A DNA stretch of 64,000 bases from Lepidodermella squamata. Lineage: Eukaryota; Animalia; Gastrotricha. The stretch covers positions 1,488,001 through 1,552,000 of the forward strand of contig JBLDXI010000031.1 of the NCBI GenBank assembly GCA_047495785.1, in the 5' to 3' direction. Made by a program: the position numbers and the translations under genes. Under the pieces are notes generated by a model. The model worked only from the letters and a program-made list of their open reading frames with translations. It did not search any database and was not told the origin of the DNA. Each line of letters begins with the position of its first letter. The first letter of the stretch is position 1. Shown piece by piece: positions 6,366-52,675 of the stretch.

Positions 6366-6962
6366 TCAAAGTTGACACAGTTCAAAGCAGTCATGAGGCG
6401 ATTTAAATGAATGTATCCTAGCCCCAACCTCGTCGCAGCCTCGGTCGACTGTCAAACATTGCTTTGTTCTCTTATCGTGTATGATGTAGGCTCGATTATA
6501 CTCATGAAGGCAATGCTTTCTAGGCTTCCTCTGCCGATAGTTGCATTTCTCCGAATCAGGCAGTATTTTTAGACGGCTGAAATGAACATAGGTAGGAACT
6601 GATGGAAAAACTAGCGGATAACCGTACCTCTTTACAAGTGCTATCGGAAGGCAACTAAATGCGCAATCGGTGTAGCTGGCGAAGGAATATTCTTTGATAT
6701 CGGGCGAGTCGCAGTCCATGTCAACTTCGAGGCAATAGCCATTATCCGCTCTGAAAATCATCAAACCCGCCCGGTAAGGTCTTACGCAGGCTGATTGCTG
6801 TTCAGACGGGCGGTAGCTGCATTTTTCGTCGATCGTCGCTTTGCCGTCATAATAATCCGACCTAATTTCGGATGAATACCGTGATGCTTCGCCGGGCAGT
6901 AAAATCTCCAAACCTCCAATGGAAAATATCCAGACGAGCCTTAGCAACTGCAAGGTTTCCAT
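6366..6962 (-). CDS. Secreted protein with two divergent Kunitz-like domains (L1)
   Basis: Hydrophobic N-terminus from ATG 6962. Two six-Cys modules KCxY..C..C..[GD]CD..SFxSxxDCxxxC. Clear paralog of the 12842 gene. Confidence 0.85.
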   Translation of the reverse strand: METLQLLRLVWIFSIGGLEILLPGEASRYSSEIRSDYYDGKATIDEKCSYRPSEQQSACVRPYRAGLMIFRADNGYCLEVDMDCDSPDIKEYSFASYTDCAFSCLPIALVKRYGYPLVFPSVPTYVHFSRLKILPDSEKCNYRQRKPRKHCLHEYNRAYIIHDKRTKQCLTVDRGCDEVGARIHSFKSPHDCFELCQL

Positions 6963-7574
6963 TTTCACTTTTTAAATTCCGCCTCGACTGTGTGCTGATC
7001 AGCCGTGGGTTCGTACGCGATCGGATTTAATTTACATCTGAAATGAAGTAATTTAGCTAGGCCTCAGATCAAACTTCCAAATGAGCCTTCCAAGCTGTTA
7101 CCGAACGAACGAAACTAGCACATTTGTCTATCAATAATTTAGACGCGACCAACATCAATATAACAATTAAGGTAAAATAAAAAATCAACAATACCCAATA
7201 GGAAAAGATAAAGGCTCGAGCAGAGGGTGAACAGGCGCTTGTCGTAGTCAGGGCACAGGCGACGAAATTGAGCAGGCACTTCGAAGAATTTATTACGGAA
7301 CCCGAGATTCATCTGACAAAGTAAGTAAGGGGACGACACAGAGGGGCTTGGCAAACACAGAGACGTAGGAGACAGCGGCAAGTTGAGAATATCAGGATTA
7401 GAGAGCCAGGAGAGGAATGACGGAAAGCAGAAAGCATAAAAGACACAGACGACAAGAATCTAGCATGAACGCCGAATAAAAATCCACTTCCAAGATTTAA
7501 ACCCCTCAGTTTCATAATTTTGTGCTAAATTTAACGAAAGAGATCAAACTCACGACAAGGATCTGTTTTGATAT

Positions 7575-7775
7575 CGTTAGCGACGCGCCAAAACAACCAC
7601 TTTGATGACTCATTCCATCGTACTTTAAGGAGCCAAACTTAATTATGAAGTACGTTCAGCTTTTTTGAGCACTGATCTTACTGATCGTAATTTGAATTTA
7701 CGTTTAATGGTCGAACGTACTTTCCGTAGAAAATCTATTAAATAGCAAAGTGGTTGTTTCAGCGCGTCGCTAACG
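7575..7775. mobile_element. MITE family A, copy 1
   Basis: ~29-bp TIR CGTTAGCGACGCGCCAAAACAACCACTTT, flanked by ATAT on both sides. Second copy at 39047-39223. Confidence 0.9.
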
Positions 7776-7795
7776 ATATTTTTTCTAAGTTGCCG

Positions 7796-7895
7796 TAGAG
7801 AGTGAAGTACCGCTAGGGATCATCCCTACCAGTTCCATCGGTCCGTACGCTGAGTTCAGTCAAAGACCAAAGAACCCTTATGCTGATTTTTGTTA
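7796..7895. mobile_element. Fragment of MITE family B; right boundary uncertain
   Basis: Reverse-complement similarity to 37295-37397 (TACCGCTxGGGATCAxCCCTACCA...ACCCTTATG). Confidence 0.65.
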
Positions 7896-9064
7896 CCCGA
7901 TAAGCGCTATCGATTGGTGTCATCGATTTGACCATATCTATTGCGAAACTCATGGATCTGATTTGCTTTAGACCCATGATTATTTTTGACCGCCGTTGAC
8001 ATTTATAATATTTGAAAATAAATGTAACTTTTAAATATTATAGAAATAAATAAATTGCATCCAATTGATTATCAGGTAACTTGCGGCTGAGAAAGAAGTT
8101 GTCGGAACTATGTAGAATTAGGATCTATTACTATTTGTTACCATAACAGCCCGGGCTACTAAAATTTCAACCTCGAACTTTTGGAAAATTCAAGAAATAA
8201 TGTTTGGTGGATCGTTCGTTTGTGATGATTTCGAACCGACTTGACCCCTCAACCCTGGGCCTTTCCATCAGGGATGGGCGATTATTTGTGAATGGGCTAC
8301 TATTGGAATAATTACGGTATTTCATCTCAACTCTCAACACATTGCTGTTTTGTTTTCAAATCACTTCACTTCAAACCAACAATCCTCAGCCAAGACTCAG
8401 CTTGGCTCAGCCAAATCTCTTAACATTGTTAGCGATAAATGGCGGCAAGATTGCAAATCGTTCAATGATTCATCGCGCTAATATCTGAACTAAAAAAGCA
8501 AAGCAGTATGTTCTTATACGATTGATCAATCAATGAGCTTCGAAGCTCAGCCGATTTCAGCCCAGAAAAATTGGCTTCAATGCCACCCGAGTTTTGACGT
8601 GTCCAAAAGCGCATATTTGCCCCATAAGCTCACTGTCAACCTCAGAAAAGATCTGTCTCAGTCACGGCGTTTCAAGTCAGAAACAACACCCATCAACGCT
8701 CTCAGCCTCAGCTCAACAATAGCCGACGAAGTGCTCAACGGAGAAAGATAATGACTATTAGCGAGGCGAGCGTGGTATCAGTGTCCGAACTCGAGGAGCA
8801 ACGCGGGGTATTAGCATGGAGCCGCTGACTGGTTATGACGAAATTTTGAAATTTTGAAACCTGCTCGTGCGCACCGGTCGGCACATGAACGCACTCAACA
8901 TAAACAAAGCCAGCGTAGGTGCCGTCGTTGTGAAAAATTATTAAAGAAAAAGACTGAAAGACTAGCAAAAATCCTACGCTAAGTGGCAAAACACTACGCC
9001 TACGTTAATTCTTCAAACTTTCTTTCCAGCAATTTTGAACCCCAAGTGTTATGACAACCTTAAG

Positions 9065-10728
9065 ATGATTACTCTAAGCAAGCAAATGTCTGTTCAGAGC
9101 GAGAATTATCAATCGCTCATATCGGCAGCGTACCGATTCGATGCGAGAGATAAAGGCGAACTGTCATTCTCGGCCGGTGACATGTTGGATATTTCGTTGA
9201 AGAAGGAACAAAACGGTTTCATTCTGGCGACGAATACGAAAACAGGCGAGCGAGGCTGGGCTCCGTTGAGTTACGTCTACAGCGAAAAGTCGCCCTTGTC
9301 ACCAACTTCACCGAAGCCGCCGCAACTAGGCGATTCAATAACTAGTCACAAGTACGTTTCCATTTTCTGAAACCGGCTTAAATTTTCTTGATTCTTATGC
9401 TCAGAGCATAAATGACTTAAAAACGAATTCAACCCAGTTTACATTACCCAATAGTTCTAATTAATATTTTTCATATTTTTAGATCCTTCTTCAACATCAA
9501 TCGAAGAAAATCCGAAATTTGGCTGATTCGCCCTGATGTTCCCCCTGGGACTTACTTAATCCGCCCCAGTTTTGGAAGTGGGGGTAAAAGCTTCGCGCTG
9601 TCAGTTCGAGGCCGCGATGAACGTGGTCTTCCAGCTGTGAAGCACTATAAAATCAACCTTTCCGACAACAATACTTGCTACATCTACAAGAAACGCGTTT
9701 TCAACGGCATCCGCCAACTTATTGATTTCTACTCTGCTTCAGAGGTTTTCCTTACCCAAAGCTACCCGTTTGAGACAGATTCCGTAGTTTTGGTCCCGCT
9801 GCACGAGCTACACATTCCTAGATATGAGATCAAATTGATGGATCGATTGGGCCAGGGACATTTTGGAGAAGTTTGGAAGGGCCAATTCAGGTCACTTCAT
9901 GTTGCTGTGAAGAAAACTATGGAACAAGCTACAGATAGCGATTTAGAGGTCGCAACGAAGATGCTGTTCAATGAAGCTACGATTTTATCTTCATTACGCC
10001 ACGAAAATTTGGTGAGATTAATCGCAGTCTCGAGCGAGAAGCAGATTTATTGGGTCGTGACCGAGTTAATGAACCGTGGCTCGTTACGCGACTTCCTTCA
10101 GAGCAGCGAGGGCCGTTCGAATATTCGAATTTTCCCGGATGTTATGACATTCCTGAGCCAGGTCGCGAATGGCATGCATTACCTGGTTGAGATTCAGAAA
10201 ATCTGCCATCGCGATTTAAGAGCGGCTAACATTTTGGTGCATCTTGACGACGACGAAGATTCGCTCAATTACGACATCAAAATCGCCGATTTCGGCCTGG
10301 CGAAACTTCTGGACGAAGCTGATGAGAATTTGTCGAATTCAAGCCGCGATTCTGTCCACGATCGCAACACGCGACTTCCGATTAAGTGGACATCACCCGA
10401 GGCCATATTACACGGCTGTTTTTCGGCCAAATCCGACGTTTGGTCGTTTGGAATTTTGGTTTACGAAGCGATTACTTATTGTTCAAAGGTCCCTTATGTC
10501 GGCAGAAGTGCTCAGGAGGTGATTGATTTCGTCCGAAATGGCGGCCGCATAATGCGAACTGAATGCCAGGCTGATTTTGCGGAAAAGGATGGCAATTTCA
10601 TGTCTAAATGCCCGGAGGAGTTGTACCAGACTCTTCTGAAGTGCTGGCATCGTGTGCCGGAGAAACGTCCAAGTTTTTCCGGGTTGAAAGCTACTTTCGA
10701 GCAATATGCTCGTGTTAAACCGACGTGA
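9065..10728 (+). CDS. Divergent Src-family-like tyrosine kinase (SH3-SH2-TK). Exons 9065..9351 and 9483..10728; an upstream exon is possible
   Basis: SH3 (ELSF..GD..TGERGWAPLSYV). Intron 9352-9482 restores SH2 (GTYLIRPS..FALSV..VKHYKI). Kinase motifs LGQGHFGEV, VAVK, HRDLRAAN (Src-family signature), DFG, PIKWTSPE, SDVWSFG. Confidence 0.92.
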
Positions 10729-11188
10729 TTGTAATTTTCTTGTTGTTTTTTTTCTCTTTCATCATGACTACTACCGAGTGCCATTGTTAAACGCCTTTGT
10801 TGCATGTAGCTGGGCTCTGTTGGAGTAACTTATTTTGTAGCTCAAATAGCTCTTTGCCAACCATGAAAAGCGTACAGTTTCCTTCATCACGGAGAAATAT
10901 ATAAATGAAAATAAACCTATAATATGTATTATTATGAACAAGAGTTTTTTATTCGAGTGAGCCAGCAGTAATCGCTTAATTGAAGCGAATTTAAACAATT
11001 GAAATGGGAATTTCAAGTGAAAAATTGTGAAAAACACCAGGTGATAGATTATTCCTGTTGGATGCAGACTAAGTTGAATTCAATGGATTCCAATAAGGGC
11101 TGGGCTTATTCACGTCACGCTCTTCTACCAACCCCAATGCTCCCGTGAAATCCTAACAAATAATTATCCATTTTTCGCTCAATTCAAG

Positions 11189-11915
11189 ATGCAGCCTGGT
11201 TCTATTTTACTAATTCACCTGTCATTTTTTGGTAAATCGGATGATTTTTTAAATTTTAGCCCAGCTTTACTTCTTCAAATATTTCCTCAGGTATTGTCCA
11301 AGGATTCACGTTTCAAGCTAACGTGGCCCTCCAAGCTAAGCATGACGATAACAACCCTGCCATTACGCCCGCCAATGGAATGTTTTTGCCCATCAACAAA
11401 TGCCAGTATCGGCCGCTTAGACCGTTTCTGGCCGGCGAGCGTCTGCAATGCGTTCGCGACTATGCCGCTCACTACATTTTGTTCAACCCAGAGACGAGAC
11501 GCTGCGAAGTAGTAGATTACGGCTGTGATCCCCACGGCGCTCGGATCAACTCATTTCGAACAATGCAGGCGTGCCGAAAGTGGTGCACATTATTAACAAC
11601 AAAGCCTTTACTTGAAAAACCAATTCGTCGTAAGTTTTCTGTTTTTTTCCTCTTCAGAGACTGGCGAGATACTGATTTTCAGGCGGAAATCTGGCTCCAA
11701 AGCAGAAATGTAACTACGTTGTGCCGCCGAAGAAGGGCCATTGTGTGTACATACGGTACAATAAGCCGTACATAATTCATATGTCTGGAACGCAAAAGTG
11801 TGGCGTTGTGAAGGCAGGCTGTGACGAAGCAGGTGTTAAGTTGCATTCCTTCCCATCGATATACACGTGTGAGAGGTCATGCCCTGTTCGATCCCCCACG
11901 TACACCAGTCAATAA
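11189..11915 (+). CDS. Secreted two-domain Kunitz-like protein (L2). Exons 11189..11231, 11291..11629, 11683..11915
   Basis: Two phase-1 GT-AG introns join three ORFs in frame. Signal peptide MQPGSILLIHLSFFGIVQG. Two six-Cys modules with GCD and SF motifs. Confidence 0.88.
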
Positions 11916-12841: not shown

Positions 12842-13522
12842 ATGAAAAATGAATTAGTGCTGTTTTTCATAGCGGTGCTCGTCGAATCCATCGGTTCTAA
12901 ACCCACACTTTCGAACCACATAAATTGAAAATAATCTCTTTCAGATTGTCAAGAAAGTGGCCGGTACCACGATGGTATGGCGACGACAGGAGAAAAGTGC
13001 AACTACGTACATAGATCGGCTGAAATCTCATCAGGCCTCTATTTTCACTGCCGCGGAATGTACGAAGATGTCTACATGATCTTCAACTCTGAAGAAGGTC
13101 TATGCATGGAAATTCGGTTTGGCTGCGACCCAGCTGAGGATAGACGGCATTCGTTCGCCAGCTATGAGGAGTGTGCTTATCACTGCCTCCCTTTTGAGCC
13201 CACGGACCGTGTGCCGTACTCGAAATACAACGGCAATCAATTCGCTTTCCCATCTTATGCAATCCCTGGCAAGATACGCCGGGAGGATACGCTGCCCGAT
13301 ACGCAGAAATGTAACTATCGTGAACCTGAGCGTGCACCTATGACAGTATGCGCTCATATATATCCACGCGATTATATTGTTCACGATGAGCAAACGAAAC
13401 GATGTAAGCGGGTAGGTCATGGTTGCGATGCGACTGGCGCAAGAATGCATTCGTTTAAATCACTCCAGAAGTGCAATGAACACTGCGTTTTCTTCCAGCG
13501 GAATATGTACACTGATATTTAG
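12842..13522 (+). CDS. Secreted two-domain Kunitz-like protein (L3). Exons 12842..12893 and 12945..13522
   Basis: Signal peptide MKNELVLFFIAVLVESIDC across a 51-nt phase-1 intron. Two six-Cys modules. AATAAA at ~13536. Confidence 0.9.
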
Positions 13523-13567
13523 ACCCGAGATCCAATAATAAAGCGGACATAAAATTTACTGGATACT

Positions 13568-14429: not shown

Positions 14430-14847
14430 ATGGAATTCCAAGTTTTATTGGCACATATTTTATTGCTTTTAATTTCTTATTTTACGTACATTGGTAAGCC
14501 CTTGAAAAGTCCACTGTTGGATGGTACTGAGATTAATTGCCATAGATTGCTGCTGCACTACCTACCCTCCGCCGAGTCCGCCCCACAACCGAAAATGTGG
14601 TTATTGGCCAGGAGGAAGTGCTTGCATCCCTCATACTTGTGGCTACAATGATAACAAAGGATTTTACGTGCATTCGGCTGGCGCTCAGGGCTGCCGTCTT
14701 GTCAAGAACGGCTGCGATGAGGATGGCGCTTACAAAGCATCGTTCAGCTCGATTGAAGAATGCCGAGCGACCTGTGACGACAACGATGAGGATTATCGAC
14801 GTTACTCACGCTTCAACAATCGACCCTGGTTTGTGAAGAGCAAATAA
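14430..14847 (+). CDS. Secreted single-domain Kunitz-like protein with extra cysteines (L4). Exons 14430..14493 and 14546..14847
   Basis: Signal peptide, 52-nt phase-1 intron, then CCC, a Pro-rich spacer and KCGY..C..C..GC..GCD..SFSSIEECRATC. Confidence 0.88.
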
Positions 14848-15082: not shown

Positions 15083-16599
15083 ATGCGTAGCTTCTTACAA
15101 TTCATCGTAACAGCTTGTTTATCAAGCCTAACACTAGGCTTATCCACCAAGGGTGGAACTTCGGAGCAAGAGCTGTTCTCAAAGGGGATGCAATTTAGGA
15201 ATGCAGGTCAATGGATTTTATCATACGACTACTTCGCTAAAGCCTGGCAACGATGGCACAAAAACAAAGAGCGGAATCTGCCTCATCAACTGACTGAGAT
15301 GGCAATCCTAGACGAGCTGCAGTTCTTAGCCTCAGAGCAGTTGGGCGATATTGAGAAAACGTTCAAATGGTGCACAATTATCAGTCAGCTGGAAGACAGC
15401 CTAAGTAGCCAGGAGACAGCTCTGCATAAGGAGGTGATAGATGCATGCAAGAGATATATAGGCATGGCGAAGATCACAAAATTTAAGAAAATTACCAAAA
15501 TGAACGCGACAGAACGAGAAGAAGCTGCTAGGAAAATGACCGAGCTCGAGGATTACAAGCTTTGCACTAAGAAACGGGGTCCATCAAGCCGGAAACTATT
15601 CTGCCGCGTTAGCGATCGCGATCGCCACCCTTTGCTGATTCTTAGTCCTCTTAGGGAAGAAATTCTGAGCCTTGACCCCGTTGTCGTTTTGTTTCACGAC
15701 ATCGCAACAGCTGCAGAAGTTGAAACACTGAAGAAAGAGGCTAAATCTAAGTTCAAAGAAGCTTCAGCAAGCAGCGATATGAACAGCGGGCTATTACGGG
15801 CTCAAGACGTTGCTTGGATTAAAAGCGAACGGATGCCGGCTCTGTCGTCTCGAATCGAAGCCTACACAGGTCTTAACACGCAGACACACGGTAGGTCGAA
15901 CGACTATAGTATGAGGGCTCGATTTTTTACTTCGTCAATTTTGTACTGGAAGGTTGTGAGATGTTCCAAATCGGGCATTATGGAATCGGCGGTCGTAAGT
16001 TTTTTCTTGTTAATAATTCCGAGGATCAAATATCAAGGCTAAGAAGTCTCTTTAAAGCCAACGCGAACGACCGTTCTTAAAATATTGCTCTCAAATGAAG
16101 CATTTCTCTTTTCAAGACTACGTCGGTCATTGGGATAATTTCAATTCATTCCGCGAGCTGGACCCAATCGGAGACCGCATAGCGACGGTGCTCATCTACC
16201 TGAATGACGTCGAGGAAGGCGGTGAAACAATTTTTCCTCTTCTTGGCTTACGCGTCGAGCCTGTCAATGGCGCAGCTCTAATGTGGTACAACTGTAATCG
16301 GAATGAAACTTCGGATGAACGCATGAGACACGCGGCTTGCCCGGTTATTCGAGGCGAAAAATGGGTATTTTATTAAGATTGGCTTTCATCTATTATAATA
16401 TCAAATGTTATTGAACCTATGCACTTTTTAGGTTGTGAATAAATGGTTCAGTTGGCGTGGCCAATTGCTACACAAGCTACATGGATTGGATCAAAATCAA
16501 CCATTCACAATTGATGACTTTAATCTCACTCCGGCAGCGAGAATGACGAAGTATACCAAAGACTTGTTTTTCGCTCCTGAAACTAAAAGAGACATGTAG
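15083..16599 (+). CDS. Prolyl 4-hydroxylase alpha subunit-like, copy 1. Exons 15083..15890, 15953..15994, 16117..16364, 16432..16599
   Basis: Signal peptide, PLREEILSLDPVVVLFHD, YGIGGHYVGHWD (HxD), DRIATVLIYLNDVEEGGETIFP, HAACPVIRGEKWVVNKW. All introns are GT-AG and in frame. Confidence 0.93.
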
Positions 16600-16885
16600 A
16601 TCAGTTATTTCTTAATAAAAATGGCGAAAGAGATTTAGATGTTTTGGAGTATAAGAGTAGAACTTTGAGTGGAAAAATCAAAACTATATGAAGCTATATG
16701 CTATCAAGACTATATGAAGCTGGTCTAAAATTCGGGTAATTTCAGTAATGGCATTTGCTCATTTTGCTCATTTAGAGCCTATTTACAATTTTACGGCATG
16801 CATTTTGCTGTCAACAAACCCAGTATTAAGCAGCACTTCGACGGAGACCCTCATTGATACATGCTATAGACCGCATACAACAAGT

Positions 16886-18261
16886 ATGCTAAGCCACACT
16901 CTTCTCATCTTAACAACCGGCTTGTTGAGCTCGGCTTTGGGCTCATCTGCCAAGGATGGCATTTCGGAACATGAGCTGTTTTCAAAGGGAATTCAGATGA
17001 CAAAACAGCGTCGATGGCTAGAGTCTTATGATTACTTTACGAGAGCTTGGCAGAAATGGCAGAAAAATGAAGACCTAGATGTGGCTCATCAATTGCCTGA
17101 AATCGAAATCCTCGACAAATTGCAATACGTGGCCTCGGAGCAATTGGATGACCGTGGGAAAACTATGAAGTGGTGTAAAATCATTGTTGATATCGAGGAT
17201 GGCCTGAGTGAGGAAGACGCTGATAAACACGGAGAGGTCCTCGAAGCATGTCGGAGGTATGTTGGCATCGAGAAGATTACAAAATCCGGGACTATCACCA
17301 AAATGGCCGAGAAGGAGCGGGAAAAAGCTGCGAGGGAGATGATGGACCTCGAGGATTATCACCTATGCAAGACGAAACCATACCCGAAATCGAGGGACCT
17401 ATTTTGTCGAATAAGCCATCGAAATCGGCTGATACTCAGCCCTGTGAAGGAGGAAATTCTGAGTCGTGACCCTGTTGTTGTGTTATTTCATGATCTCATT
17501 ACTTCACGCGAAATCGGGGTGTTAAAGGATTCGGCCAAATCGAAATTGACCGAGGCCAGTGTGGATATTGAAATGGATAAAGGGCTTCTACGAATTCAGA
17601 ATGTTGCCTGGGTGAAAAGTGATCTCATGCCGGCTCTCTCGGCTCGAATTCGATCCTACACAGGTCTCAACACTGATAACGACGGTGAAGCAATATATTT
17701 TAATTTCGAAGCTATCGTTGTTGATGCTTTCGTATGAACAGGTAGCGAGATGTATCAGGTTGGGCACTATAACGTTGGAGGGCGTAAGCTTTGAGAAACC
17801 ATCGAGGGCACCATCGATTTCTCCTTTTTCAGACTATGTCGGCCATTGGGATTACTTCAATTCATTCCACGAGCTGGACCTGTTTGGAGACCGCATGGCG
17901 ACCGTCCTAATCTACATGAACGATGTCGAAGAGGGTGGTGGAACAATTTTTCCGCTTTTAGATTTACATGTCCGTCCTCAAAAAGGCGCGGCTTTGGTGT
18001 GGTACAACTACCATCGCAATGAAACTGCCGATGAGCGAACGAAACACGCAGCTTGTCCAGTGATTCGCGGCGAGAAATGGGTATTGAAAGACATTTTCAA
18101 TTACGAATTAGACAATGATTTTGTGCTTCAAGGTCGTTAATAAGTGGTTCAGATGGCGTGGCCAGCTATTGCATAAGCAACACGGGCTGAAGCAAAAGCA
18201 TAAATTCACTATCAATGACTTCGAACTTATCTCAGCAGCGAAAAAAGCGAAACGTCAATAA
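16886..18261 (+). CDS. Prolyl 4-hydroxylase alpha subunit-like, copy 2. Exons 16886..17684, 17742..17783, 17833..18080, 18133..18261
   Basis: Tandem paralog with the same intron positions and intact HxD...H...K motifs. Confidence 0.93.
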
Positions 18262-18427: not shown

Positions 18428-19806
18428 TTAGCCTAACAATGGATACAAACAAGATTGTTGGCAATCTTCTCTTGAACGGAAAGCGAAAGGCGCCAAATTT
18501 TCACTTCGACATCCAGTACTCCGGACGATGCATCGCATGAGTCGAGCCTCAAAGACAATGTAGGGGCCAATGTTGTCGCGACATGTCTGACGCGGCATCC
18601 GGTAACGGCATCGATTATCGGTTGACATATCGACTGGCATCGGAGAAGCCTGGGTTACCGGCAAGTTTGAACCACCACACCTGCCCTGGCACTCCTGCAT
18701 TGACGAAAACGCGTATTTTCGAATTTCAGTTGCGCTACAGCCGCTCGATTCAGTTTTGCACTGCCTGGTTTTCGAGTCGAAAACAATGTGATCGCCAATG
18801 TACATCGCGCAGGTGATCTCAGGCGAACTATACGAGCACTTATCAACATCTGGAGCCTGAGTGACCGCGCCACACCTAGCCTGGCACTCTTGCATCGATG
18901 GAAACGCGTATTTTCTAATTTCATTCGCGTTACAGCCGCTTGATTGAGTCGAACATTGCCGGGTAGCTGAGTCGAAAACGATGTTCTCGCCAATATACAT
19001 CATACAAGTCATTTGCGGCTTGGTGTACGAGCATTTGTCGACGAAACCTGGATTAGATGGAGCTTGAGTTGTGAAGCTCACATCAGAGCGTTGAGTAACA
19101 GGTGCAGATCGACATGTTTGCTCGCACTCTTGTTGGCTCGAGAAGGCATACTGGCGAATGTATTCTGCGCTGCAACCACTAGATTGGGTCGTGCATTGCC
19201 GCGTCTTTGAGTTGTAGACAACATTTTCGCCGATATACATTGCGCAAGTGACCTCAGGCATTTCATAACTGCATTTGTTCACTGAAAATATATAACTTCA
19301 TCAGTCTTTTCAATTTTGATTAATAATGGTTTATAGAGTTGCCGTGGAATAAGGCTGGAAAACAGTTTTAGACGACAGCTGATATGCTGATATGCCGTAT
19401 TAATTCCCACAGAGATGAAATGATTCCGACGGTAAAATTATGGACGTTTTGTATGTGATATAATTCATTCGGATTCGTCAAATCGCCGGCGAATTTAGAT
19501 GATTATTTCAAATCTACAAAAAGGCGAACCTTGATTATTTTGCCGCTGTCCATTTGATTCACATGCAGCTTGACACTCAGGCATGGAATTGAACGAAACC
19601 GCTCGAACGGAATCGGCATTGCAGCCGCCGCTTTGAATCGTACATTTTCCTTGATTCGCATCGTACACGATATTCTCGCCAATGTACATCATGCATAGAA
19701 CGCTCGGGATTCGATAGTTGCATTTCGGATTTTGGCATTGAGCCAAATTAGCAAAAACCGCAAGTGTTACTACCAGAAAAGTCGCGGGATAGTTTTCGGA
19801 GTACAT
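18428..19806 (-). CDS. Secreted multi-Kunitz-like protein K1 (5 domains). Exons 19806..19530 and 19281..18428
   Basis: Exon 1 is signal peptide plus one domain. Phase-1 intron, then four C-x8-C-x16-C-x6-C-x15-C-x3-C modules. Ends YPLLG*. Confidence 0.93.
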
Positions 19807-34626: not shown

Positions 34627-34883
34627 ATTTAGCGTCGTCCAGTTGATCCACATGCAGCTTGACACTCAGCCATGGAATAAAATGACAGAGCTCGAACAGA
34701 ATCAGCAATGCAGCCGCCGCTTTGAATCGTACATTTGCCATGGTTCGCATCGTAGAGGATACACTCGCCGATGTACATCGCGCTTAGGACATTCGGAATG
34801 CGATAATTGCATTTCGGATTTTGGCAATGTCCTAAATTTGCGAAACTCGCAAATGCAACGGCAAGAAGTTTCTCGAGATGGAT
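34627..34883 (-). pseudogene. K5 pseudogene: orphan exon 1 of K2 type
   Basis: ATG changed to ATC, TAA after TGRR, no downstream exons. Shares the K2 change (LSAMYIGECILY). Confidence 0.88.
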
Positions 34884-37738: not shown

Positions 37739-38399
37739 TTTGCTATTCCAGTGGTTGAAATTATGGAGAGCCCGTCGGGCTGCGCTTTATATACGCTCAG
37801 AACTTGAAGATTATTCATAACAATGCCAATAATTACATTTTAGGCGTGCTGTTTACTTCGGCGATAAAAAAACTGTTTCGAATATTTTTATATATTTTAC
37901 GTAGGCAGATGAGCTTAGCGATCTGGTTTTTCTTCTTAAAGCGTGTCAGGTATGCTCGGCTAGCGCCGCAGTGAGCCGCTTTTGTAGCATTTTTTCTGGT
38001 CAATTCCAACTGCTTACGTGCATTGTCGCCGTCACGCCACTTGAGACGCCGAAGGTAAACAAGCACGAACAAGGCATATTGTCTATTTTGACCTAAGAGG
38101 CCGGGAAATCTGGCAATCAGATCTTCCTCCGCTGTCTAGCCATGATGAACAAATAGATAATTATAAGATGGGAGGCGGAGGAAAATGCGTGGGCGAATCT
38201 GGAACAGAACACTTATATCTGAAGGATGGCATGCTTGAGCGGATTGGAGGTTGATGGTAAATAATTCCAAATGATGAGAGCCTCTGGATCTGACTAGAAA
38301 TTGACAATTTTTCATTGGGTTAGGACAGTCAAAGGATTGTGAGTGCTAAATATAAACCTAATACTGTTAAATTCTGTCAATTCTTATTCACTAAACTCC

Positions 38400-40110
38400 G
38401 TAAGGTTCTGCCTGAACGAATTATCTCAGACGAAACCGACGACGGCGAGCGACGGTATCCCAGAATGTGCGCTGAAAGCAGCAGCAAATCTCACATGCAC
38501 AAGCCATCTTCAACAAAGTCGTCACCGAAAACGAAATCCCTGAAATATGGAAAATTGTAAGAGATGCCTAGCCCTCCAGATCAAACAGTTTATGCACGAA
38601 TCTAAATTTATGTTGCCTGCTCAATTTGGTTTCCGCCGCATCACTCAATAGATACATGTCTCACCAAAATGACAAATGACTGGCGAGTTGCTATCCACCG
38701 CGCTTTAACAGTTGCTGTTATAAGTATAGACATGAGCAAGGCATTCGATAACCTGAACCCTGCTGGTATAATTTCGTCGCTGAAAAGAATTCACTGGAGC
38801 TAATGACTAGCTACATTAGCGGATGTCAACAGATTACCAAGATAAACAATCAACCATCCTCGCCAGCTTTCATAAATTATGGAGTACCTCAAGGGTCAGT
38901 CTTAGGACCTCCGCTATTTCGATATATGTAAACGAAATCTCAACTGTTTCTATCAAATCCACCATCGTTCAATATGCGGACGATACAACCGTCTATTTTG
39001 CGGCCAAGTCTGATCTCGAAACTCAACAAGTTTTACAAACCGATATCGTTAACGACGCGCCAAAACAACCACTTAGATGACTCATTCGATCGTACTTTTA
39101 GTCGCCTAACGTAATGGTGAAGTACGTTAGGCCTTTTGAGCACCGATTTTTTCCTAATTTCGAACGTACTTTCCTCATAAAATCTATAAATAGTAAAGTG
39201 GTTGTTTTGGCGCGTCGCTAACGATATCAACCTAGTCACCAGCTGGCTAAGTACAAACAACCTTAAAGTAAGCGGAAAAAAGTCCCAACTAATGATAATT
39301 TCATTAAGCAAATCCGATCGAAAAATTGATATGTCTATTGACAGCGACAAGGTAGACGAAACCGAATCGATGCGACTACTGGGATTCACATTCGACTGCA
39401 AACTTCTTCACCGAGACCGCATCGACAGCGCGTGTTGCAAGGCGCGCAAAGGCCTGTTTGCTCGCCGCGAAAAATGACTTGAACCGAATATGTCTGAAAG
39501 CGATGGCGAATGGCCTGGTATTTCTTTTATTATTTGCATTACTGCGACGCTTGCGAAGCCTGCAAGACTTCAAGAGATCGAATGCAAGGCCTACAGGACA
39601 GAGCCGTTCGTATCATCATGAACGCGCCGTACAATGCCGACGCAGCTCCTTTACGGAAAGAGCTTGGTTGGCTGGACTTGTCTGGGAAACGCAACGTCCA
39701 TTTGGCGTCTTTTATGTTTCGATGCGTCATCGGCGAAGGCCCTGACGCCATTATTAACTTATTTACTGTCAGCAAGCCAAGTCGCTTTCGCAGCTCGGGC
39801 TTAACCTTCCAGGTACCGAAGATGCGGCTCGATTTCGGAATGGCCAGCCTGAGCTATCGCGGCCCGACATTTTTCAACACCCTGCCAGCTGCCAGTCAAT
39901 TTCTATTGCTCACAACATCGAACAATCGATATTGGCGATTACGACGGCACTCTACCAATGTGCGACTGCGGTCTCAAAGCTTGCGCAAGCGCAAAAGACT
40001 GCCGACAAATAGTCTACGAAAACTTCTTAAATTGTTGATCATTTTACTACATTTGTTGTATTGTTGGGTACTGATTGTTGCGACTTATGAAACGGGCTGA
40101 ATAGACATCA
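38400..40110 (+). mobile_element. 5'-truncated, decayed non-LTR retrotransposon (reverse transcriptase, CR1/L2-like)
   Basis: RT motifs across frameshifts: DGIP, QFGFR, IDMSKAFD, YGVPQGSVLGPPLF, YADD, and C-terminal LQDRAVRII..LRKELGWL..YRGPTFFNTLP. Confidence 0.9.
39047..39223. mobile_element. MITE family A, copy 2, nested in the LINE RT
   Basis: Same TIRs and interior as 7575-7775, ATAT-flanked. Removing it restores LQTDINLVTSWL. Confidence 0.92.
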
Positions 40111-42094: not shown

Positions 42095-42850
42095 ATAAAG
42101 TACGGATGATAATTTTTTTGCCTCGCAGTTTATTAATAGCTCCGCAACCATGAAGAATTTTTTGGAGCGAGTTTCACAAGCCGATAGATCTAGTCTGGTG
42201 TAAACTTTCCTTAAATCCTCGTTAAATTTGGATAAAATGTGAGAAATTGATGACGAAAATGCTTCGTGTGATTTTTGGTGAAAAAGTTCATTTTTGAAAA
42301 ATGCTATTTTCCATTTGTAGCGTTTTTTTGTCATTTTCCTGCAGTAAAGCTAAATTGGACCATATTCTTAGCAGGGATCGATGTCAATACCACTCCGTTA
42401 ACCGAGATTTTCACTTTGGACCGAACAGAAACGTTTCTCAATGACGAAATGAGATCCAAATGGGTTTTGAAATTTTTGGGAAACCGCACCAAATTTGCAA
42501 AAAGCTGCAAGTTTCGGGTTGTGCAATTGTTGATTTTTGTGGAAATCGGCGACATGGATGAATAGTGGACCACCTCTCGACTAAATCTGAACCCTCTGAC
42601 AAGAAGAAAGATTGCCACAAGTCACATCGGATGTAAAATAGCATTTTTCAAAAATGAACTTTTTCACCGAAAATCACAAGAAGCATTTTCGTCACCAATT
42701 TCTCAAATGTTATCCCAATCTAACGAGGATTTCAGGAAAGTTTACAACAGACTAGGTCTATCGAACGGTGAAACCCGCTCCAAAAAATTCCTCATGGTTA
42801 CGGAGTTATTAAAAAAATTCGAGGCAAAAAAATCATCATCCGTACTTTAT
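42095..42850. mobile_element. Long-TIR non-autonomous element (~215-bp arms)
   Basis: ATAAAGTACGGATGAT...AAAAATGCTATTTT (42095-42310) is the imperfect reverse complement of 42635-42850. Confidence 0.9.
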
Positions 42851-43308: not shown

Positions 43309-44494
43309 TTAGTCAGACCGTATACAAGTCGTTTGGCACTCAGATACGCTTCGGAAAGCGTACTTGGCGACTTCATCACGGCTGCAACCGCTTACTTGAT
43401 AAATACACTGGCGTGAGTTTGCGTCAAAAACGATAAAATCGCCGATATACATCATGCATGTAACTTCCGGCTTTCGAAACGAGCATCTATCAACGGAACC
43501 TGGACCCACTGAAAACGGGTAGCCGATCGGAAATGTATCCTCGGGGAGTTGAAAAGGAGGTGCAGAATTTCCAAGGCACCTTCGCTCGCACTCTTGTTGG
43601 CTCGAGAAGGCGTACTGGCGAACGTATTCGGCGCTGCAACCGCTGTATTGGGTCGTACACCGCCTTGTCTTCGAGTCGTAGACAATATTTCCACCGATTA
43701 ACATTGCACAAGTATTCTCTGGCACTTCATAGCTGCATTTGTCGACTGAAATGACTGAAAATAGAATGTTCAAATGTTAACAATTCAGCTTTCATCTTAT
43801 CGGCGAAACCTGGCTTTGGCGCGGGCGTGATGAATGTATCATCAGCGCGTTGAATAACACGTGCAGAATTAACACGGCATGTTTGCTCGCATTCTTGTTG
43901 GCTGGAGAAGGCGTACTGCCGAACGTATTCCGCGCTACAACCACTCGTTTGGGTCACGCATTGCCGAGTCCTTGAGTCGTAGACAATATTTCCGCCGATA
44001 ACCATTGCACACGTGACCTCCGGCACTTCATAGCTGCACTTGTCCACTGTAAAAGAGTTTGCAAAACTATAAATTAATCCTTCATCTCATTGTTCTTCTA
44101 CGTTTAACGCTTGTATTATAACTAATTAACCCACATTTTCGAGGCCCCAAGCTACACAACACCATTGCATACTTTGATTCCTTACTCTACGTTTAGCTTA
44201 TTAAATACAAGTTGAACCTGGATTTATTTGGCGTCGTCCAGTTGATTCACATGCAGCTTGACACTCGGCCATTGAATTGAACGAAACAGCTCGAACGGAA
44301 TCAGCATTGCAGCCGCCGCTTTGAATCGTGCATTTGCCTTGATTCGCATCATAGACGATGTTTTCGCCAATGTACATCATGCATAGAAAATTCGGAATGC
44401 GGTAGTTGCATTTCAAATTTTGGCAATTCGCCGAATTAGCGAAAATCGCTAGAGTAACTACGAAAAACTTCGCAAGAATTTCTTCGAGATGCAT
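43309..44494 (-). CDS. Secreted multi-Kunitz-like protein K7 (4 domains). Exons 44494..44218, 44046..43810, 43745..43309
   Basis: Phase-1 introns. 5' half resembles K6 and the 3' end resembles K4 (CIRSD*). Confidence 0.88.
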
Positions 44495-45154
44495 TTTGCT
44501 ATTCCAGTGGTTGAAATTATGGAGAGCCCGTCGGGCTGCGCTTTATATACGCTGAGAGCCTCAAGATTATTCATAACAATGCCAATAATTTGAGGCGTGC
44601 TGTTTACTTCGGCGATAAAAAAACTGTTTCAAATATTTTTATATATTTTACGTAGGCGCAGATGAGCTTAGCGATCTGGTTTTTCTTCTTAAAGCGTGTA
44701 AGGTATGCTCGGCTAGCGCCGCAGTGAGCCGCTTTTGTAGCATTTTTTCTGGTCAATTCCAACTGCTTACGTGCATTGTCGCCGTCACGCCACTTGAGAC
44801 GCCGAAGGTAAACAAGCACGAACAAGGCATATTGTCTATTTTGACCTAAGAGGCCGGGAAATCTGGCAATCAGATCTTCCTCCGCTGTCTAGCCATGATG
44901 AACAAATAGATAATTATAAGATGGGAGGCGGAGGAAAATGCGTGGGCGAATCTGGAACAGAACACTTATATCTGAAGGATGGCATGCTTGAGCGGATTGG
45001 AGGTTGATGGTAAATAATTCCAAATGATGAGAGCCTCTGGATCTGACTAGAAATTGACAATTTTTCATTGGGTTAGGACAGTCAAAGGATTGTGAGTGCT
45101 AAATATAAACCTAATACTGTTAAATTCTGTCTTATGTCTTATTCACTCAACTCT

Positions 45155-47049: not shown

Positions 47050-49113
47050 TTAGCCGAGCAACGGATACAAACAAGCTTGCTGGCATTCCTGTGACGTGCG
47101 GAAAGCAAAAGGCGCCAAATTCTCACTCCGGCATCCGATGCTTCTGACAATACAACGCATAAGTCGAGCTTCGAAAACAATGTACGGCCCAATGTTAACA
47201 CGACACGTCTGAAGTGGCATCCTGTAACTGCATCGATTATCGGCTGAAATATCAACTGGCATCGGAGGAGCCTGAGTGACTGGCCAGCCGGAACCACCAC
47301 ACCTGCCCTGGCACTCTTGCATCGATGAAAATGCGTACTTCCTAACTTCAGTTGCGCTACAACCGCTCGATTGAGTTATACACTGCCTTGTTTTTGAGTC
47401 GAAAACGATGTTCTCGCCAATGTACATCATACAGGTGACTTCAGGCGAACTATAAGAGCATTTATCAACATCTGAGCCGCCCGGAGCTGGGGAAACTGGC
47501 CAGTTAGAACCACCACATCTAGCCTGGCACTCCTGCATCGATGAAAACGCGTACTTTCTGACTTCATTCGCGTTGCAGCCGCTTGATTGAGTCGAACACT
47601 GCCGGGTGGCTGAGTCGTAAACGATGTTCTCACCAATGTACATCATACAAGAGATTTGTGGCTTTGTGTACGAGCATTTATCGACATCAGAGCCTTGTGA
47701 TGGTCCTTGAGTCACGAAAATCGGCGGGACCCGAGTTACTGGGGCTAGAGAGCCTCGGCCACAAGCGGATTGGCACTCAGGCAGACTTCGGAAGGCGTAT
47801 CTTGCGATTTCCTCCCGGCTACAACCGCTTGTCTGAACATAGCACTGTTGCGAGGTTGCGTCGAACACGATATTATCGCCGATATACATCATGCAGGTAA
47901 CCTCCGGCTTGCGAAACGAGCATTTATCGATGAAGCCTTGATTCGAAGGAGGTTGGGTTATGAAAATTGGTGGCTGGCGGGTTGGATTAATTGGATTTAC
48001 GTTTGATCCCGAGTTGCCTCGGCATGAATACTCGCATTCTTGCAGGCTGGAGAACGAATAACCGATAGAGTGTCTACAACTGCTGTGGCTCTGCGTGCAA
48101 ATCTGGCGAATTGGGTCGTAAACCACGGTATTAGGGTTGTACATCGGGCAGGATTGGTCCCAATCACGATAAGTGCATCGCTGATCTCTTGAGCCAGCAT
48201 TTGGCTGGGTTATGAAGATCGGACCGGGGCGTTGAGTGACAGCTCCAGAGTTTCCGCGGCAAATTTGCTCGCATTCTTGCCGGCTCGAGAAAGCGTACTG
48301 GCGAACCTGTTCCAAGCTGCATCCGCTATACTGAGCCGTGCATTGCCGCGTCTTTGAGTCGTAGACAAAATTTTCGCCGATATACATTTCGCAGGTAACC
48401 TCAGGCACTTGATAACTGCATTTGTTGACTGAAAAGACACAATTAAAATCAATTCAGTTTTCATCTCCTTCATGTTTAAAGATTTGCTGTACGCATTTTC
48501 ATCTTGAATCTGTTTTTAAAAACAGGAAAGTCGAATAATGTCTTAAAAGTGAGCAGATACAGTTTCTAGCTTCAATGTGATTGAAGTGAAATTCTCAAAT
48601 TTCAATGACTTTGAGAAACTGTCCCATTCTAGATCAGGATTTTCAAAAATCGATATACCTTACTGTTATTTAAGCTAATTAGATGAACTCCAAAGCTAGC
48701 AACCCGATATCTCTTCGAATATCAGATTCATAACTTCAGTACATATCCTTAAGTCCTATTGAGTACAAGGCGTAACCGCTTATATTTCTTTAACTGAGGG
48801 TAAACTTATTTCAAAATTATTTCGAAAAGAGCAAACCTTGATTATTTTGTTGCTGGCCTGCTGATCCGCAGGCAGTTTGACATTCAGCCATAGAATTGAA
48901 TGAAGCCGCTCGAACGGAATCGGCACTGCAGCCGCCGCTTTGAATCGTACATTTTCCTTGATTCGCATCGTAGACTATAAACTCGCCAATGTACATCGCA
49001 CATAGAACATTCGGAATACGATAGTTGCATTTCGGATTTTGGCATTGTGCCAAATTCGCGAAAATCGCAAGGATTACTACCAGAAACGTCGCGAGATTTT
49101 TGTCGCAGTTCAT
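47050..49113 (-). CDS. Secreted multi-Kunitz-like protein K8 (7 domains). Exons 49113..48837 and 48428..47050
   Basis: Signal peptide plus domain, phase-1 intron, then six further modules including one unique divergent module. Ends YPLLG*. Confidence 0.93.
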
Positions 49114-50708
49114 TTTACTATTCCCGGGATTGAAGCAATAAAGAGCCGTGCGGGTTGCGCTTTATATTTACTCAGAAACCGGCGATTAATCATCAGAATG
49201 TCAAACATTACACTTGACACAGAGGCGTGTTGTTTTCTGCGGCAATAAAAACTACGAGTTGTAAGTCCTTTTGCTTTTTTATACATTTAACGTAGGCAGA
49301 TGAGCCTGGCGTTGTAGTTTTTTCTTTCATACTTATGCGTCAGGCTTGGCTTGTGTCAGTGAGCTGCTATCACTGCGCATTTTTTTGCTGCTCAATACTA
49401 ACGTTCGTTGTCGCAGTCACGCGAGTCGAGAGGCCGAGAGTAAACAAGCACGAACAATGCGCATTGTCTTGTATCAATATTCGCCTTATATGATGAGACT
49501 GTGAAATTTGACAATCGTTTCCTTGCCCCGTGTCCTGACTAGTGCCAGTCAAGACTTCGGAATCCTTTTCGGGGAGCTTACTAAGAGAAAAATAAGCAAA
49601 AGGGCCATTGAATCCCGCACATCTAAACGACCATTGTCTTATCAAAGAGAAAAGTACCATCAATAACAATCAAGAATCATCTTATGATTGTATATTTTTT
49701 GTTCATTTTGAGAGTTATTGAAGAAAAAGGTTGTGTCGAAACATGAAACCGCACTACGAACCCGCAACATTGAATCAGAAGGCAAAAAGGATGGCAAGGA
49801 TAGGTTAATGCGGATAACCAGGGATACCTACTTAGTTATTGAGCATTTTATTGTTTTAAAAATTTACGCTTTTATGGTCTCAGCTGAATTCACATCTGAA
49901 GCCCGCACGGCTGTTTCATGATCATTCAACGTGCCAGTTTCTGATTGATAGGTTACGTGTCAGTAGAATTCCGCCCCGCGGATAGCTTATCCACCATTTT
50001 ACAAAACTTATTGTGAAACGGCTACCTTTGGGGCCAGATGCTACATCTTCCGAGTAATGATTCTGAAATTAATTTGAGAATACTTACACTGGTTTTATTG
50101 CTTATTGTCCGAACGCTTAAAACGAACAAACCAATTAAATATATTTTTAGCGGTGTCAAGCTCCACAGACATTATCAAGGAATGCCCCGCTCAATTTCGA
50201 TCCAATTTAAAGCATCACGTAGCTCATACGTTTTACCTCAACTTCTGATAGGTGGAATGACAATCTGTTTAATAAAACTTATATATTTAGGCTAGGGGTC
50301 GTGCCGATGATGATCCAAGGTAAGCTGCTCCCCTCGAGGATTCAATTTCCGTGATTCTGATGTGTAAAGCTACTCACTGGGGTGGAGAACGTCGAAAACA
50401 GTTGTAAACTCCCATCTCCCGTGTAACTGACGCACTCTGACGCTATAATTGAAACCCCCAACCAAATCAACGTGTACCTTGCGTGGATCAAATAGCGTAC
50501 GGCGTAGCGAGTTTAACTCGAAACTCAAATTCCGATGACAAATGATACGCGCATGGAATGAACGCAACGTAGGCGTTCGATATCGGCTGACCATAGCGAC
50601 TGTATATAAGCGGCATTAATATTTCAAAACGATAATTTCTACCCACTCGTGCAGCCACAAACGACAACTACGCCAAATTTAACGGCCAGTAGCTACGTTT
50701 TTTACGAC

Positions 50709-51158
50709 ATGAAATCGATGCCGGTAGCTGTTCTAGTCCCGTTTGCCATTCTAGCCGCTTTTGCTGGGGTCAATTGCGACAATGCCTGCCCGGCACCGGC
50801 GAAGCGTTACATTTGCCAAAATGAAAGATGCCTAGCGAAACCACCCAGCTGTTCGCCCCTGTCACGGGAAGAATACGCGAGTATGCCAGAATGTCGGTGG
50901 TCTTGCGGTTATTTCAAGTGCTTCTATTCGGAAAAATGGCTCGCCCTACTTCGAATCAGCGGCCCGTTGAGCCGTAACGGGTCTTGCACGCCGGAGAATC
51001 CACCCAAGCCAAGCATTATCTACGACTTCGACCAAGGCCGGTGTGTTGGGCGGAATTTTACAAGTTCTTGCATGTTGAAACAAGCCAAGCCATATATTTT
51101 CGACTCTGACGATGACTGCCGGAAAATGTGCGTAGAAGATGCGGAAGTGCAAAAATGA
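50709..51158 (+). CDS. Secreted Cys-rich protein with a partial and a full divergent Kunitz-like module (K9)
   Basis: TATATAA at ~50603, signal peptide, motifs YASMPECRWSC and KCFY..C..IIYDFDQGRC..SSC..YIFDSDDDCRKMC. AATAAA at ~51218. Confidence 0.85.
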   Translation: MKSMPVAVLVPFAILAAFAGVNCDNACPAPAKRYICQNERCLAKPPSCSPLSREEYASMPECRWSCGYFKCFYSEKWLALLRISGPLSRNGSCTPENPPKPSIIYDFDQGRCVGRNFTSSCMLKQAKPYIFDSDDDCRKMCVEDAEVQK

Positions 51159-52248
51159 ATCGTTTCGTTGTATGTAGCGTTTCTTAGCCATTGTATCAAC
51201 CGGTTTTCAGATTCTGCAATAAAAATTGACAAGAATAACAACAAAAATTGACTGTCTTTTCAGCGGTCTCATCCAACCAAACGTGTGACATTCAAATCAA
51301 AAACTTCCGTCGCAATAACTTCATCACACAAAACTTCCGTGATCAAAAACTGTTCATCAAGTCAAAAATTCCGTAAATTTGTCTCTTAGTCTTGAATACT
51401 TAATAGAACGGAAATGGATCCCACGCTGCTCCGACCGTGGATTGTAGCAGCTCTCAATACTCCAATAGACAACCGTGAGAGGTATAGCGATTTTGCCATT
51501 CCAAACTCTCGCGAATACAGTTTTGACAGCAACTAAGTAATCAATAATGCTTTTTATACGGAATTTGCTCCCTGAGAGGAGGATTGAAAATTCCAATGGA
51601 ATACACCGCACATTGATTCGGAAATTTTCATAATCATGATTCGGATATACCTCATTTCACTCCGTGAGAAATTATGTTTAGAATAGCTTTTCCAGCTTAT
51701 CTTATGTTTTAATGTACCATTTTAACTTCTCTCATTATTTTCTTCTGATATTAAAGTAGTCTCTCAATGGTTAAACCGATTAACTTGAAAATTAAGGATT
51801 GAACTTATCTCCAAGGGATATGGGCGAGGTTCCGACAGTTCGTGTTTCTCAAGATGAAGACGGTGTCGACGTTATCTAGTATGGCTAATTCCTCACGAGC
51901 GTTCATGTCATCTTTGTGTTCAAAGCGCTATTCAATTTTGCGACGAAGCTATTGAATTACTGTTGAATTTCCCATCATTTATTAATATACTGGATGTTAG
52001 AGCTCTCCTGGAGGCACGTAATCTGGAAAAGCATAAGACGGCTTCTCAATGCAAAAGGAAAAGCTTCAACATTTTATTTTGATGAAACAAAAATTGGACG
52101 GAAATGATGACAGAATTGCAGCAACAAAACACTTGGCTCAGTGCCAGTAGGTCTTTCAATACATAAACAATCAGGCGAAAGAAGGACGAAATAAAAAAAT
52201 TGAAACGTCAACGGGCATGCAAACAAACCCGGGACATCGCTTCAGTTA

Positions 52249-52675
52249 CTAAGCCTGATAGTACCGATTGCCGATCAGTGGTATCAAAGTCAATAATGAC
52301 GTGACCATAGAGCAGTCGAATCTTGCGGTTTCACCTGTGATAATTAAAGAAAATAGGTTATTCTATGCCTTCAAAATATTGTTCTGGGATCTGGGATTTG
52401 ATGAACCAACCTTGGTTTATTAATTGTTGGCCTGAACCCGAAGATTCACACGCCGATTGGCACTCGGCGATAGAATTGAAAGAAGCTGCCCTGGTGTTAT
52501 CAGCGCTACAGCCGGAAGACTGAGTCGTGCATTTTCCCTTATTTGCGTCGTAGACAATAAAATCGCCGATATACATCGCACAAGAGATTTCGGGGATGCG
52601 ATAGCTGCATTTCGAACTTTGGCAAACCACTGATCCAGTAAAAAACAGGCAAATTACTAATATGAATTTCAGCAT
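52249..52675 (-). CDS. Secreted single-domain Kunitz-like protein K10. Exon 52675..52411 and probable exon 52334..52249
   Basis: Signal peptide plus N-type module and the same NQG|GT donor as K1-K8. A candidate phase-1 exon gives GETARFDCSMVTSLLTLIPLIGNRYYQA*. Confidence 0.8.

Follow-up and report, generated by a model that had tools for sequence, protein, structure and literature searches.

Here, we describe a cluster of tandemly duplicated genes encoding secreted proteins in which several divergent Kunitz modules are strung together, located in a 64,000-nucleotide stretch (the window) of contig JBLDXI010000031.1 from the gastrotrich Lepidodermella squamata. By fold and profile bridging, the array modules fall within the Kunitz/BPTI superfamily, of which they are best described as a new sub-variant. 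For the locus as a whole, we somewhat favor the reading that these proteins act as multi-headed serine-protease inhibitors. An earlier note, made from the sequence of the window, had called the locus its best candidate for an undescribed system; this was overstated, because the modules represent a divergent branch within the thoroughly known Kunitz domain, which often undergoes tandem expansion.

A six-frame regular-expression search of the whole window retrieved 34 modules with the exact spacing C-x8-C-x16-C-x6-C-x15-C-x3-C and 38 with a loosened spacing, and 100 dinucleotide-preserving shuffles of the window contained none with either. A hidden Markov model (HMM) built from the exact modules and run on the six-frame translation of the window identified 45 significant modules, none of them beyond positions 6366–52675. 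Of the 45, 37 belonged to type A, which was confined to the minus strand (positions 18449–52612), and 34 of these 37 had the exact spacing. The remaining eight modules (type B) were more divergent, with a first loop of 10 to 16 residues and a second of 17, and were located at 6375 and 6651 on the minus strand and at 11449, 11703, 13049, 13304, 14659, and 51012 on the plus strand. The modules are distributed over eight array genes (G1–G8), five type-B genes (B1–B5), and one remnant (Table 1), in agreement with the earlier estimate of about 45 domains in about 13 genes. The spacing proposed at the same time held for type A and failed for type B and for one type-A module of G7 (48022–48183, minus strand), which has 13 rather than 15 residues between Cys4 and Cys5, scored 26 bits on the family HMM, and had no Pfam match. 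In the length of this loop, the module is intermediate between the rest of the family and canonical Kunitz domains. The span 6366–52675, which had been described as a large locus, is not uniform, and unrelated genes and repeats are interspersed among the module genes.

The type-A modules were classified by sequence into six subtypes, designated N, E, F, T, S, and R. All motifs quoted in the earlier note were found in the modules, including K-C-x-Y at the start, an aromatic residue in the hairpin (VY/VF-D), and F-x-S-x-x-E-C; the SSGCSAEYVRQYAF block was found in the E subtype. Five of the six cysteines were invariant, and Cys2 was retained in 34 of 36 type-A modules. Two minus-strand modules termed N*, one in the apparently intact G2 (22530–22694) and one in the remnant (34650–34814), have Ser at the Cys2 position and gain a Cys seven residues further on. 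Six cysteines are thereby retained, apparently with a displaced disulfide partner that the two paralogues share.

All searches and structural predictions were performed per exon or per module. AlphaFold2 prediction of a type-A E module with the 41-module alignment gave a predicted local distance difference test score (pLDDT) of 92.6 and a predicted template-modeling score (pTM) of 0.73, and the model consisted of an N-terminal turn, a hairpin (14–23 and 28–35), a short helix (38–42), and a C-terminal helix (49–55). The best 50 matches of this model in a Foldseek search of the PDB were all Kunitz/BPTI structures (probability up to 0.98; template-modeling (TM) score, 0.54–0.60), including BPTI, TFPI K1, boophilin, textilinin, ShPI-1, and conkunitzin. 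The second module of B3, representing type B, was predicted with a pLDDT of 88.2 and the same order of structural elements, and its best 50 Foldseek matches were again all Kunitz structures, albeit weaker (probability up to 0.72). The BPTI fold that had been predicted for the modules was thus recovered for both types. Sequence and profile searches of the PDB returned Kunitz domains as 3 of 3, 42 of 42, and 38 of 40 matches with E-values of 0.04–1, and the non-Kunitz pair among the last 40 consisted of two Muscleblind zinc-finger chains.

At E ≤ 1, the Pfam Kunitz profile PF00014 matched 21 of the 41 modules. Its gathering score of 21 bits was exceeded by a single module, the E module of G7 (48259–48426), which reached 25.0 bits only when scanned alone and aligned to profile positions 2–52 of 53. 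The exons and remaining modules scored 12.9–20.1 bits or gave nothing, and no exon passed (the best two scored 19.9 and 20.1 bits), consistent with the expectation that standard profiles might score the family weakly. The canonical loop lengths of 8, 15, 7, 12, and 3 residues were not observed, those of type A being 8, 16, 6, 15, and 3. HMMER alignments to BPTI and collagen VI placed one additional residue between Cys2 and Cys3, one fewer between Cys3 and Cys4, and three more between Cys4 and Cys5, confirming the three extra residues noted earlier; the three residues inserted after Cys4 are those modeled by AlphaFold2 as the short helix. Other Pfam matches were rejected: a DUF6217 match of one type-B module was under the cut-off (17.8 vs. 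25 bits), and PlyCA, AKAP, and further matches were noise.

A profile bridge connected the modules to recognized Kunitz domains. The module profile matched the protein P0007 with an E-value of 2.4e-7 in a search of 1.84 billion proteins; hhalign gave a probability of 94.6% and an E-value of 7.2e-8 over all 56 columns, and PF00014 recognizes a Kunitz domain in that part of P0007 (30.4 bits). Given both fold and homology, we are confident that the modules are true but divergent Kunitz domains.

The array genes share a common architecture. In each, the first exon encodes a hydrophobic signal peptide followed by an N module, and one or two subsequent exons contribute two to six additional modules in the fixed order E, (E), F, T, S, R. 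The conserved donor of the first exon follows Asn-Gln, and the acceptor of the next exon, a likewise conserved TTTCAG, immediately precedes the Asp/Asn-Lys-Cys of a module. The introns are conserved, have GT/AG boundaries, and are all in phase 1, and the six fully resolved models (G1, G2, and G4–G7) all comprise whole codons. G4, G5, and G6 each have a symmetric (1-1) exon with a single E module, an arrangement that permits exon duplication. A TATA-containing block approximately 50 nucleotides upstream of the ATG is conserved in G1 and G3–G7, and similarity among the paralogues extends 600–900 bp upstream of the first exon. The encoded proteins have three to seven modules (G1–G7) and about 310–550 residues, with linkers rich in Pro, Ser, and Thr; they stop soon after the last module, and no hydrophobic tail or membrane anchor was seen, which together with the signal peptides agrees with the secreted repertoire proposed earlier. 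X-Pro-Gly triplets occur in the linkers at the exon ends.

Among paralogous modules of the same subtype, the ratio of nonsynonymous to synonymous substitution (dN/dS) was 0.08–0.24 with a mean synonymous divergence (dS) of 0.35–1.2, indicating old duplications and strong purifying selection on the coding sequence. The array genes are very probably real, secreted, and selectively constrained. In G5 and G6, the first exon and approximately 700 bp of promoter are 96% identical over 1 kb (37398–38398 vs. 44154–45153), whereas the other exons are at most 89% identical; this pattern points to gene conversion or to a partial duplication that occurred recently.

Some members depart from this architecture. 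In exon 1 of G3, the donor is not at the conserved place of the paralogues, and in-phase GT alternatives lie just downstream, such that the gene model is uncertain. No downstream module exon was found for G8; its N module scored 14.8 bits on PF00014, and the gene is either complete with a single module or a truncated duplicate. The flanks of the first-exon remnant at 34629–34883 resemble those of G4, and the remnant is probably a pseudogene fragment. Regarding the type-B genes, the two modules of B1 scored 18.4 and 30.3 bits on the type-A HMM, and B2 scored 18.3 bits on PF00014, under the cut-off. An intron is implied in B2 because its two modules occupy different frames. B5 is located inside the array on the strand opposite to the array genes and had no Pfam match.

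To identify relatives in other organisms, we performed an exhaustive profile search of 1.84 billion representative proteins, which yielded nine matches at E ≤ 0.001, none of them from an annotated genome, in line with the lineage-specific family that the earlier note had proposed. Five were true relatives: P0001 has four modules, P0002 two, and P0003 one, and P0004 and P0005 each have a lipocalin followed by one module. The family spacing was present in 8 of the 10 modules of these five proteins. Pfam detected no Kunitz domain in any of the five, returning no match at all for P0001–P0003 and lipocalin models only for P0004 and P0005. All true relatives lay on unannotated contigs from metagenome assemblies or one read-archive assembly, beside ordinary animal genes (Abi, ankyrin, polycystin, and a PTR2 transporter), and an array like that of the window was looked for on these contigs and found on none. 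Since the spacing is common to the relatives and the array is absent from their contigs, the signature is a character of the family and the eight-gene array a local expansion. P0006 and P0007 were more distant Kunitz-like proteins, and P0009 was a false positive, a WD40 protein matched via a repeated short motif. On one contig (L002:524–4905), two or three lipocalin-module units apparently lie head to tail, with modules at 1284–1508 and 3312–3506 and a lipocalin Pfam match at 3805–4530. A word-indexed protein search with the 284-residue four-module exon gave no match because such a search requires shared 5-mers; the exhaustive profile search did find relatives. A scan of metagenome contigs with the 14 closest modules gave 252 pattern matches, with no true relative among them. 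The literature, searched for Kunitz expansions with atypical spacing and for lipocalin-Kunitz fusions of invertebrates, provided context but no description of the family.

We then focused on the proposed function. The array proteins would be extracellular, tight-binding, multi-headed inhibitors of serine proteases. The P1 residue of each module, which follows Cys2, would face the protease active site together with its neighbors, and the loop before Cys4 would make the second contact. Across 36 modules, P1 was Met in 15, Ala in 12, Arg in four, Ser in three, Glu in one, and Lys in one; Met or Ala thus occupied 27 of the 36, and Arg was found in four of the five C-terminal R modules. Heads with Met or Ala at P1 would be directed to chymotrypsin- or elastase-like enzymes and those with Arg to trypsin-like enzymes, so that a single protein could cover several proteases. 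Within subtypes, amino-acid differences per pair were highest at P4 (0.71), P2' (0.47), P1 (0.45), and two positions of the Cys3–Cys4 loop (0.40–0.42), and no variation was observed in the core, the cysteines, the Gly before Cys4, or the Phe matching BPTI Phe45. In classical Kunitz inhibitors of family I2, the positions that vary here make up the two edges in contact with the protease. The subtype order is conserved across the array paralogues, as is the domain order in multi-headed inhibitors such as TFPI. The three-residue helix inserted next to the second contact loop may, judging from the model, change the target that is bound.

Several observations weigh against inhibition, and for this specific function the arguments deduced from the sequences appear to us evenly balanced. 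The variation is only modestly concentrated by region, with 0.27 differences per pair in the P1–P3' columns and 0.16–0.23 elsewhere. P4 is not Gly, unlike in classical inhibitors, and the residues aligned to the BPTI Asn43–Asn44 region are not conserved. The insertion beside the secondary binding loop could block or alter canonical docking, and a disulfide topology of 1-6, 2-4, and 3-5 would be implied by the fold match. Many Kunitz domains are non-inhibitory, for example collagen VI C5, channel-blocking toxins, and the apical-matrix protein MLT-11 (PMC13181417), and Pro/Ser/Thr-rich linkers under strong purifying selection would suit a structural protein equally well.

Such a structural role, in which strings of Kunitz domains would serve as stable, disulfide-locked blocks of a matrix, mucus, eggshell, or adhesive material, as with MLT-11 and collagen VI, seems to us rather unlikely. 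It would account for the three to seven modules per gene with proline-rich linkers, for the strong purifying selection and conserved domain order, and for the two prolyl-4-hydroxylase-like genes within the locus alongside the X-Pro-Gly triplets; the Kunitz domain of collagen VI alpha-3 was among the best PDB sequence matches, and MLT-11 offers a precedent for multi-Kunitz matrix components (PMC13181417). The within-subtype variation, which peaks at the canonical protease-contact loops and is not evenly distributed, and the inhibitor-compatible P1 residues argue against this role, and these small proteins (about 310–550 residues) showed no low-complexity, collagen-like, or other matrix domains. 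More doubtful is a broader proposal that the x8-x16-x6-x15-x3 modules are an old, distinct Kunitz subclass of poorly sampled invertebrates, in which the inserted helix would form a new recognition surface for targets other than classical serine proteases (another protease class or a non-protease ligand) and the lipocalin fusions would parallel vertebrate AMBP independently. A venom or other offensive secretion blocking ion channels or the proteases of prey or host, in the manner of dendrotoxins, conkunitzins, sea-anemone peptides, and tick salivary proteins, is improbable. Its appeal lies in the fold and sequence matches, which include conkunitzin-S2, textilinin, alpha-dendrotoxin, beta-bungarotoxin B chain, ixolaris, and boophilin, and in a lineage-specific tandem expansion like those of ticks (10.1101/2024.02.29.581698; PMC5438962). 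Against it, the array proteins have three to seven domains and a dN/dS of 0.08–0.24, and nothing points to a venomous or parasitic animal, the neighboring genes being ordinary. Channel-blocking Kunitz toxins are single-domain and usually under diversifying selection, which also counts against this role.

Two further alternatives concern the modules and genes themselves. That the modules are unrelated to Kunitz domains, either through another six-cysteine fold converging on BPTI or as an artifact of the structure predictor, is highly improbable: the PDB sequence and profile E-values were all weak (0.04–1), the Foldseek E-values were 0.05 or worse with TM scores of only 0.54–0.60, and the canonical spacing is lacking, yet these weak matches were nearly all Kunitz (3 of 3, 42 of 42, and 38 of 40 by sequence; 50 of 50 by fold, twice), one module passed the curated Pfam cut-off across almost the whole profile, and the bridge to the Pfam-positive P0007 was significant. 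Least probable of all is that the array consists of decaying, unexpressed duplicates. The first-exon remnant lacking a start codon and downstream exons, the single-exon G8, the moved donor of G3, and the retrotransposon fragment and repeats between the genes would be expected from decay; the seven multi-exon genes, however, retain open frames of 311–551 codons, splice sites, TATA blocks, and signal peptides, and dN/dS is far under 1 although dS reaches approximately 1.2.

We compared the locus with known systems. The modules share with Kunitz/BPTI domains (PF00014, MEROPS I2; BPTI, TFPI, and collagen VI alpha-3 C5) the six cysteines in the same order, the predicted fold, the Gly before Cys4, the Phe at the position of BPTI Phe45, an acidic or polar residue and Cys ahead of the last helix, and C-x3-C in that helix. 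They differ in the spacing, the replaced signature around Cys4, and the extra short helix, and 40 of the 41 modules are under the Pfam gathering score. The array proteins resemble multi-Kunitz inhibitors, such as TFPI (three domains), bikunin/AMBP, the tick proteins boophilin, ixolaris, and ornithodorin (two each), and SmCI of the worm Sabellastarte (three), in combining a signal peptide with several Kunitz folds on flexible linkers and in having a conserved P1 type per position. Several of these inhibitors were among the fold or sequence matches of the modules, with identities of about 25–29% over a domain; unlike them, the array proteins have up to seven domains and are encoded in a local array of eight paralogues. 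The order of a lipocalin followed by a module in P0004 and P0005 is like that of AMBP (a lipocalin and two Kunitz domains).

Kunitz families of tick saliva, sea anemones, and snakes have non-canonical loop lengths, and standard profiles are only partly sensitive to them. The array resembles these expansions in its tandem duplication within one lineage and its non-canonical loops, and differs in the strong purifying selection on its modules, their rigid order, and a spacing common to relatives from other organisms. Lineage-specific Kunitz expansions with odd spacing are familiar from ticks and venomous animals, and the existence of the array is unsurprising. Lineage-specific Kunitz expansion by tandem duplication is outlined for ticks in two sources (PMC5438962; 10.1101/2024.02.29.581698). 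The array proteins are also comparable to C. elegans MLT-11, a multi-Kunitz apical-matrix protein (PMC13181417), in being secreted and in having many Kunitz domains in a row, and MLT-11 illustrates a possible non-inhibitory role in a matrix. No sequence relationship between MLT-11 and the array was seen beyond the domain family. MLT-11 is encoded by one large gene with canonical, Pfam-positive domains, unlike the array.

What is new here is this particular spacing signature and its conservation across several animals, the rigid multi-domain architecture, and the lipocalin fusions in relatives. These data do not define a new class of system, and the functional importance of the locus depends on expression and targets. 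They do reveal an annotation gap, in that standard Pfam annotation would leave almost all of the 13 genes and P0001–P0005 as having no domain, whereas structural prediction and profile bridging assign these proteins firmly to the Kunitz fold. The signature of fixed spacing and a three-residue helical insertion could seed a sub-profile for neglected invertebrate genomes and eukaryotic metagenome contigs. The array additionally provides a case of repertoire growth by gene duplication and symmetric phase-1 exon duplication in which each domain position keeps its identity.

Table 1. Coordinates of the module genes and other features of the window, and of two lipocalin-module relatives on other contigs. 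Slashes separate exons; nt, nucleotides; ORF, open reading frame; LTR, long terminal repeat
Feature	Coordinates	Strand	Organization
Array gene G1	18428–19806	−	N / E-T-S-R; exons 19806–19530, 19281–18428; 1131 nt, in frame
Array gene G2	21000–22775	−	N* / E-T-R; exons 22775–22499, 21658–21000; 936 nt, in frame
Array gene G3	24555–26011	−	N-F / E-F-R; exon 1 from 26011, N and F without intron between; exon 2 25222–24555
Array gene G4	27861–29541	−	N / E / E-F; exons 29541–29265, 28776–28537, 28288–27861; 945 nt, in frame; two phase-1 introns
Array gene G5	35732–37738	−	N / E / E-F-T-R; exons 37738–37462, 36992–36756, 36609–35732; 1392 nt, in frame; phase-1 introns
Array gene G6	43309–44494	−	N / E / E-F; exons 44494–44218, 44046–43810, 43745–43309; 951 nt, in frame
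Array gene G7	47050–49113	−	N / E-odd-F-T-S-R; exons 49113–48837, 48428–47050; 1656 nt, in frame
Array gene G8	52358–52675	−	Signal peptide and single N module; conserved donor retained at 52411
N*-type first-exon remnant	34629–34883	−	No start codon at the site of the paralogues, degraded promoter block, early stop, no downstream module exons
Type-B gene B1	6366–6962	−	One open frame; signal-like hydrophobic N-terminus; modules 6651–6827 and 6375–6551, x10/x17/x6/x15/x3
Type-B gene B2	11323–11915	+	Modules about 11398–11586 and 11703–11882; 5' signal-peptide exon not placed
Type-B gene B3	12977–13522	+	Modules about 12995–13186 and 13304–13486 (second one folded); 5' exon not placed
Type-B gene B4	14430–14847	+	One seven-cysteine module, core 14659–14775, 20.7 bits; possible signal-peptide ORF from 14430 in another frame
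Type-B gene B5	50649–51158	+	Signal-like N-terminus; truncated module and divergent module 51012–51131 (17.2 bits)
Lipocalin-module relative P0004	L003:54–872
Lipocalin-module relative P0005	L006:4037–4810
Ankyrin-repeat gene	15–1462	+
SH3-SH2 tyrosine kinase gene	9035–10728		Within the module-gene span
Two tandem paralogous prolyl-4-hydroxylase-alpha-like genes	15083–16376, 16748–18140	+	C-terminal exons match 2OG-FeII_Oxy_3
Non-LTR retrotransposon reverse-transcriptase fragments	~38800–40100	+	More than one frame, weak RVT_1; spacer G5–G6
Inverted repeat	42095–42314 / 42631–42850		220-nt arms, 90% complementary, 316 nt apart; spacer G5–G6
346-residue ORF	53480–54520	−	No Pfam match
Pancreatic-type lipase fragment	54788–55120	−
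Carboxypeptidase A-type gene	57890–59252	+	With propeptide
Arrestin-domain gene	59544–60691	−

Among the other genes of the window, the two prolyl-4-hydroxylase-alpha-like genes are located between the type-B genes and the array and share 67–73% DNA identity over their aligned parts. The single protein match of the hydroxylase neighbor was to a metagenome contig (28% identity), and a functional tie between these enzymes and the linkers of the array proteins is speculative. The reverse-transcriptase fragment at 38.8–40.1 kb is a decayed insertion. The inverted repeat at 42 kb, whose arms contain short ORFs mirroring each other, may be a foldback-type element. No Rfam families or tRNAs were found in the window. 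The best named matches of the kinase were 37–42% identical and came mostly from molluscs, a brachiopod, a bryozoan, an annelid, and a nemertean, and the top match overall, for the Src-family domain, was 52% identical and came from a metagenome contig. With its kinase at most 42% identical to named proteins, mostly from lophotrochozoans, the source animal is very poorly represented in public protein sets.

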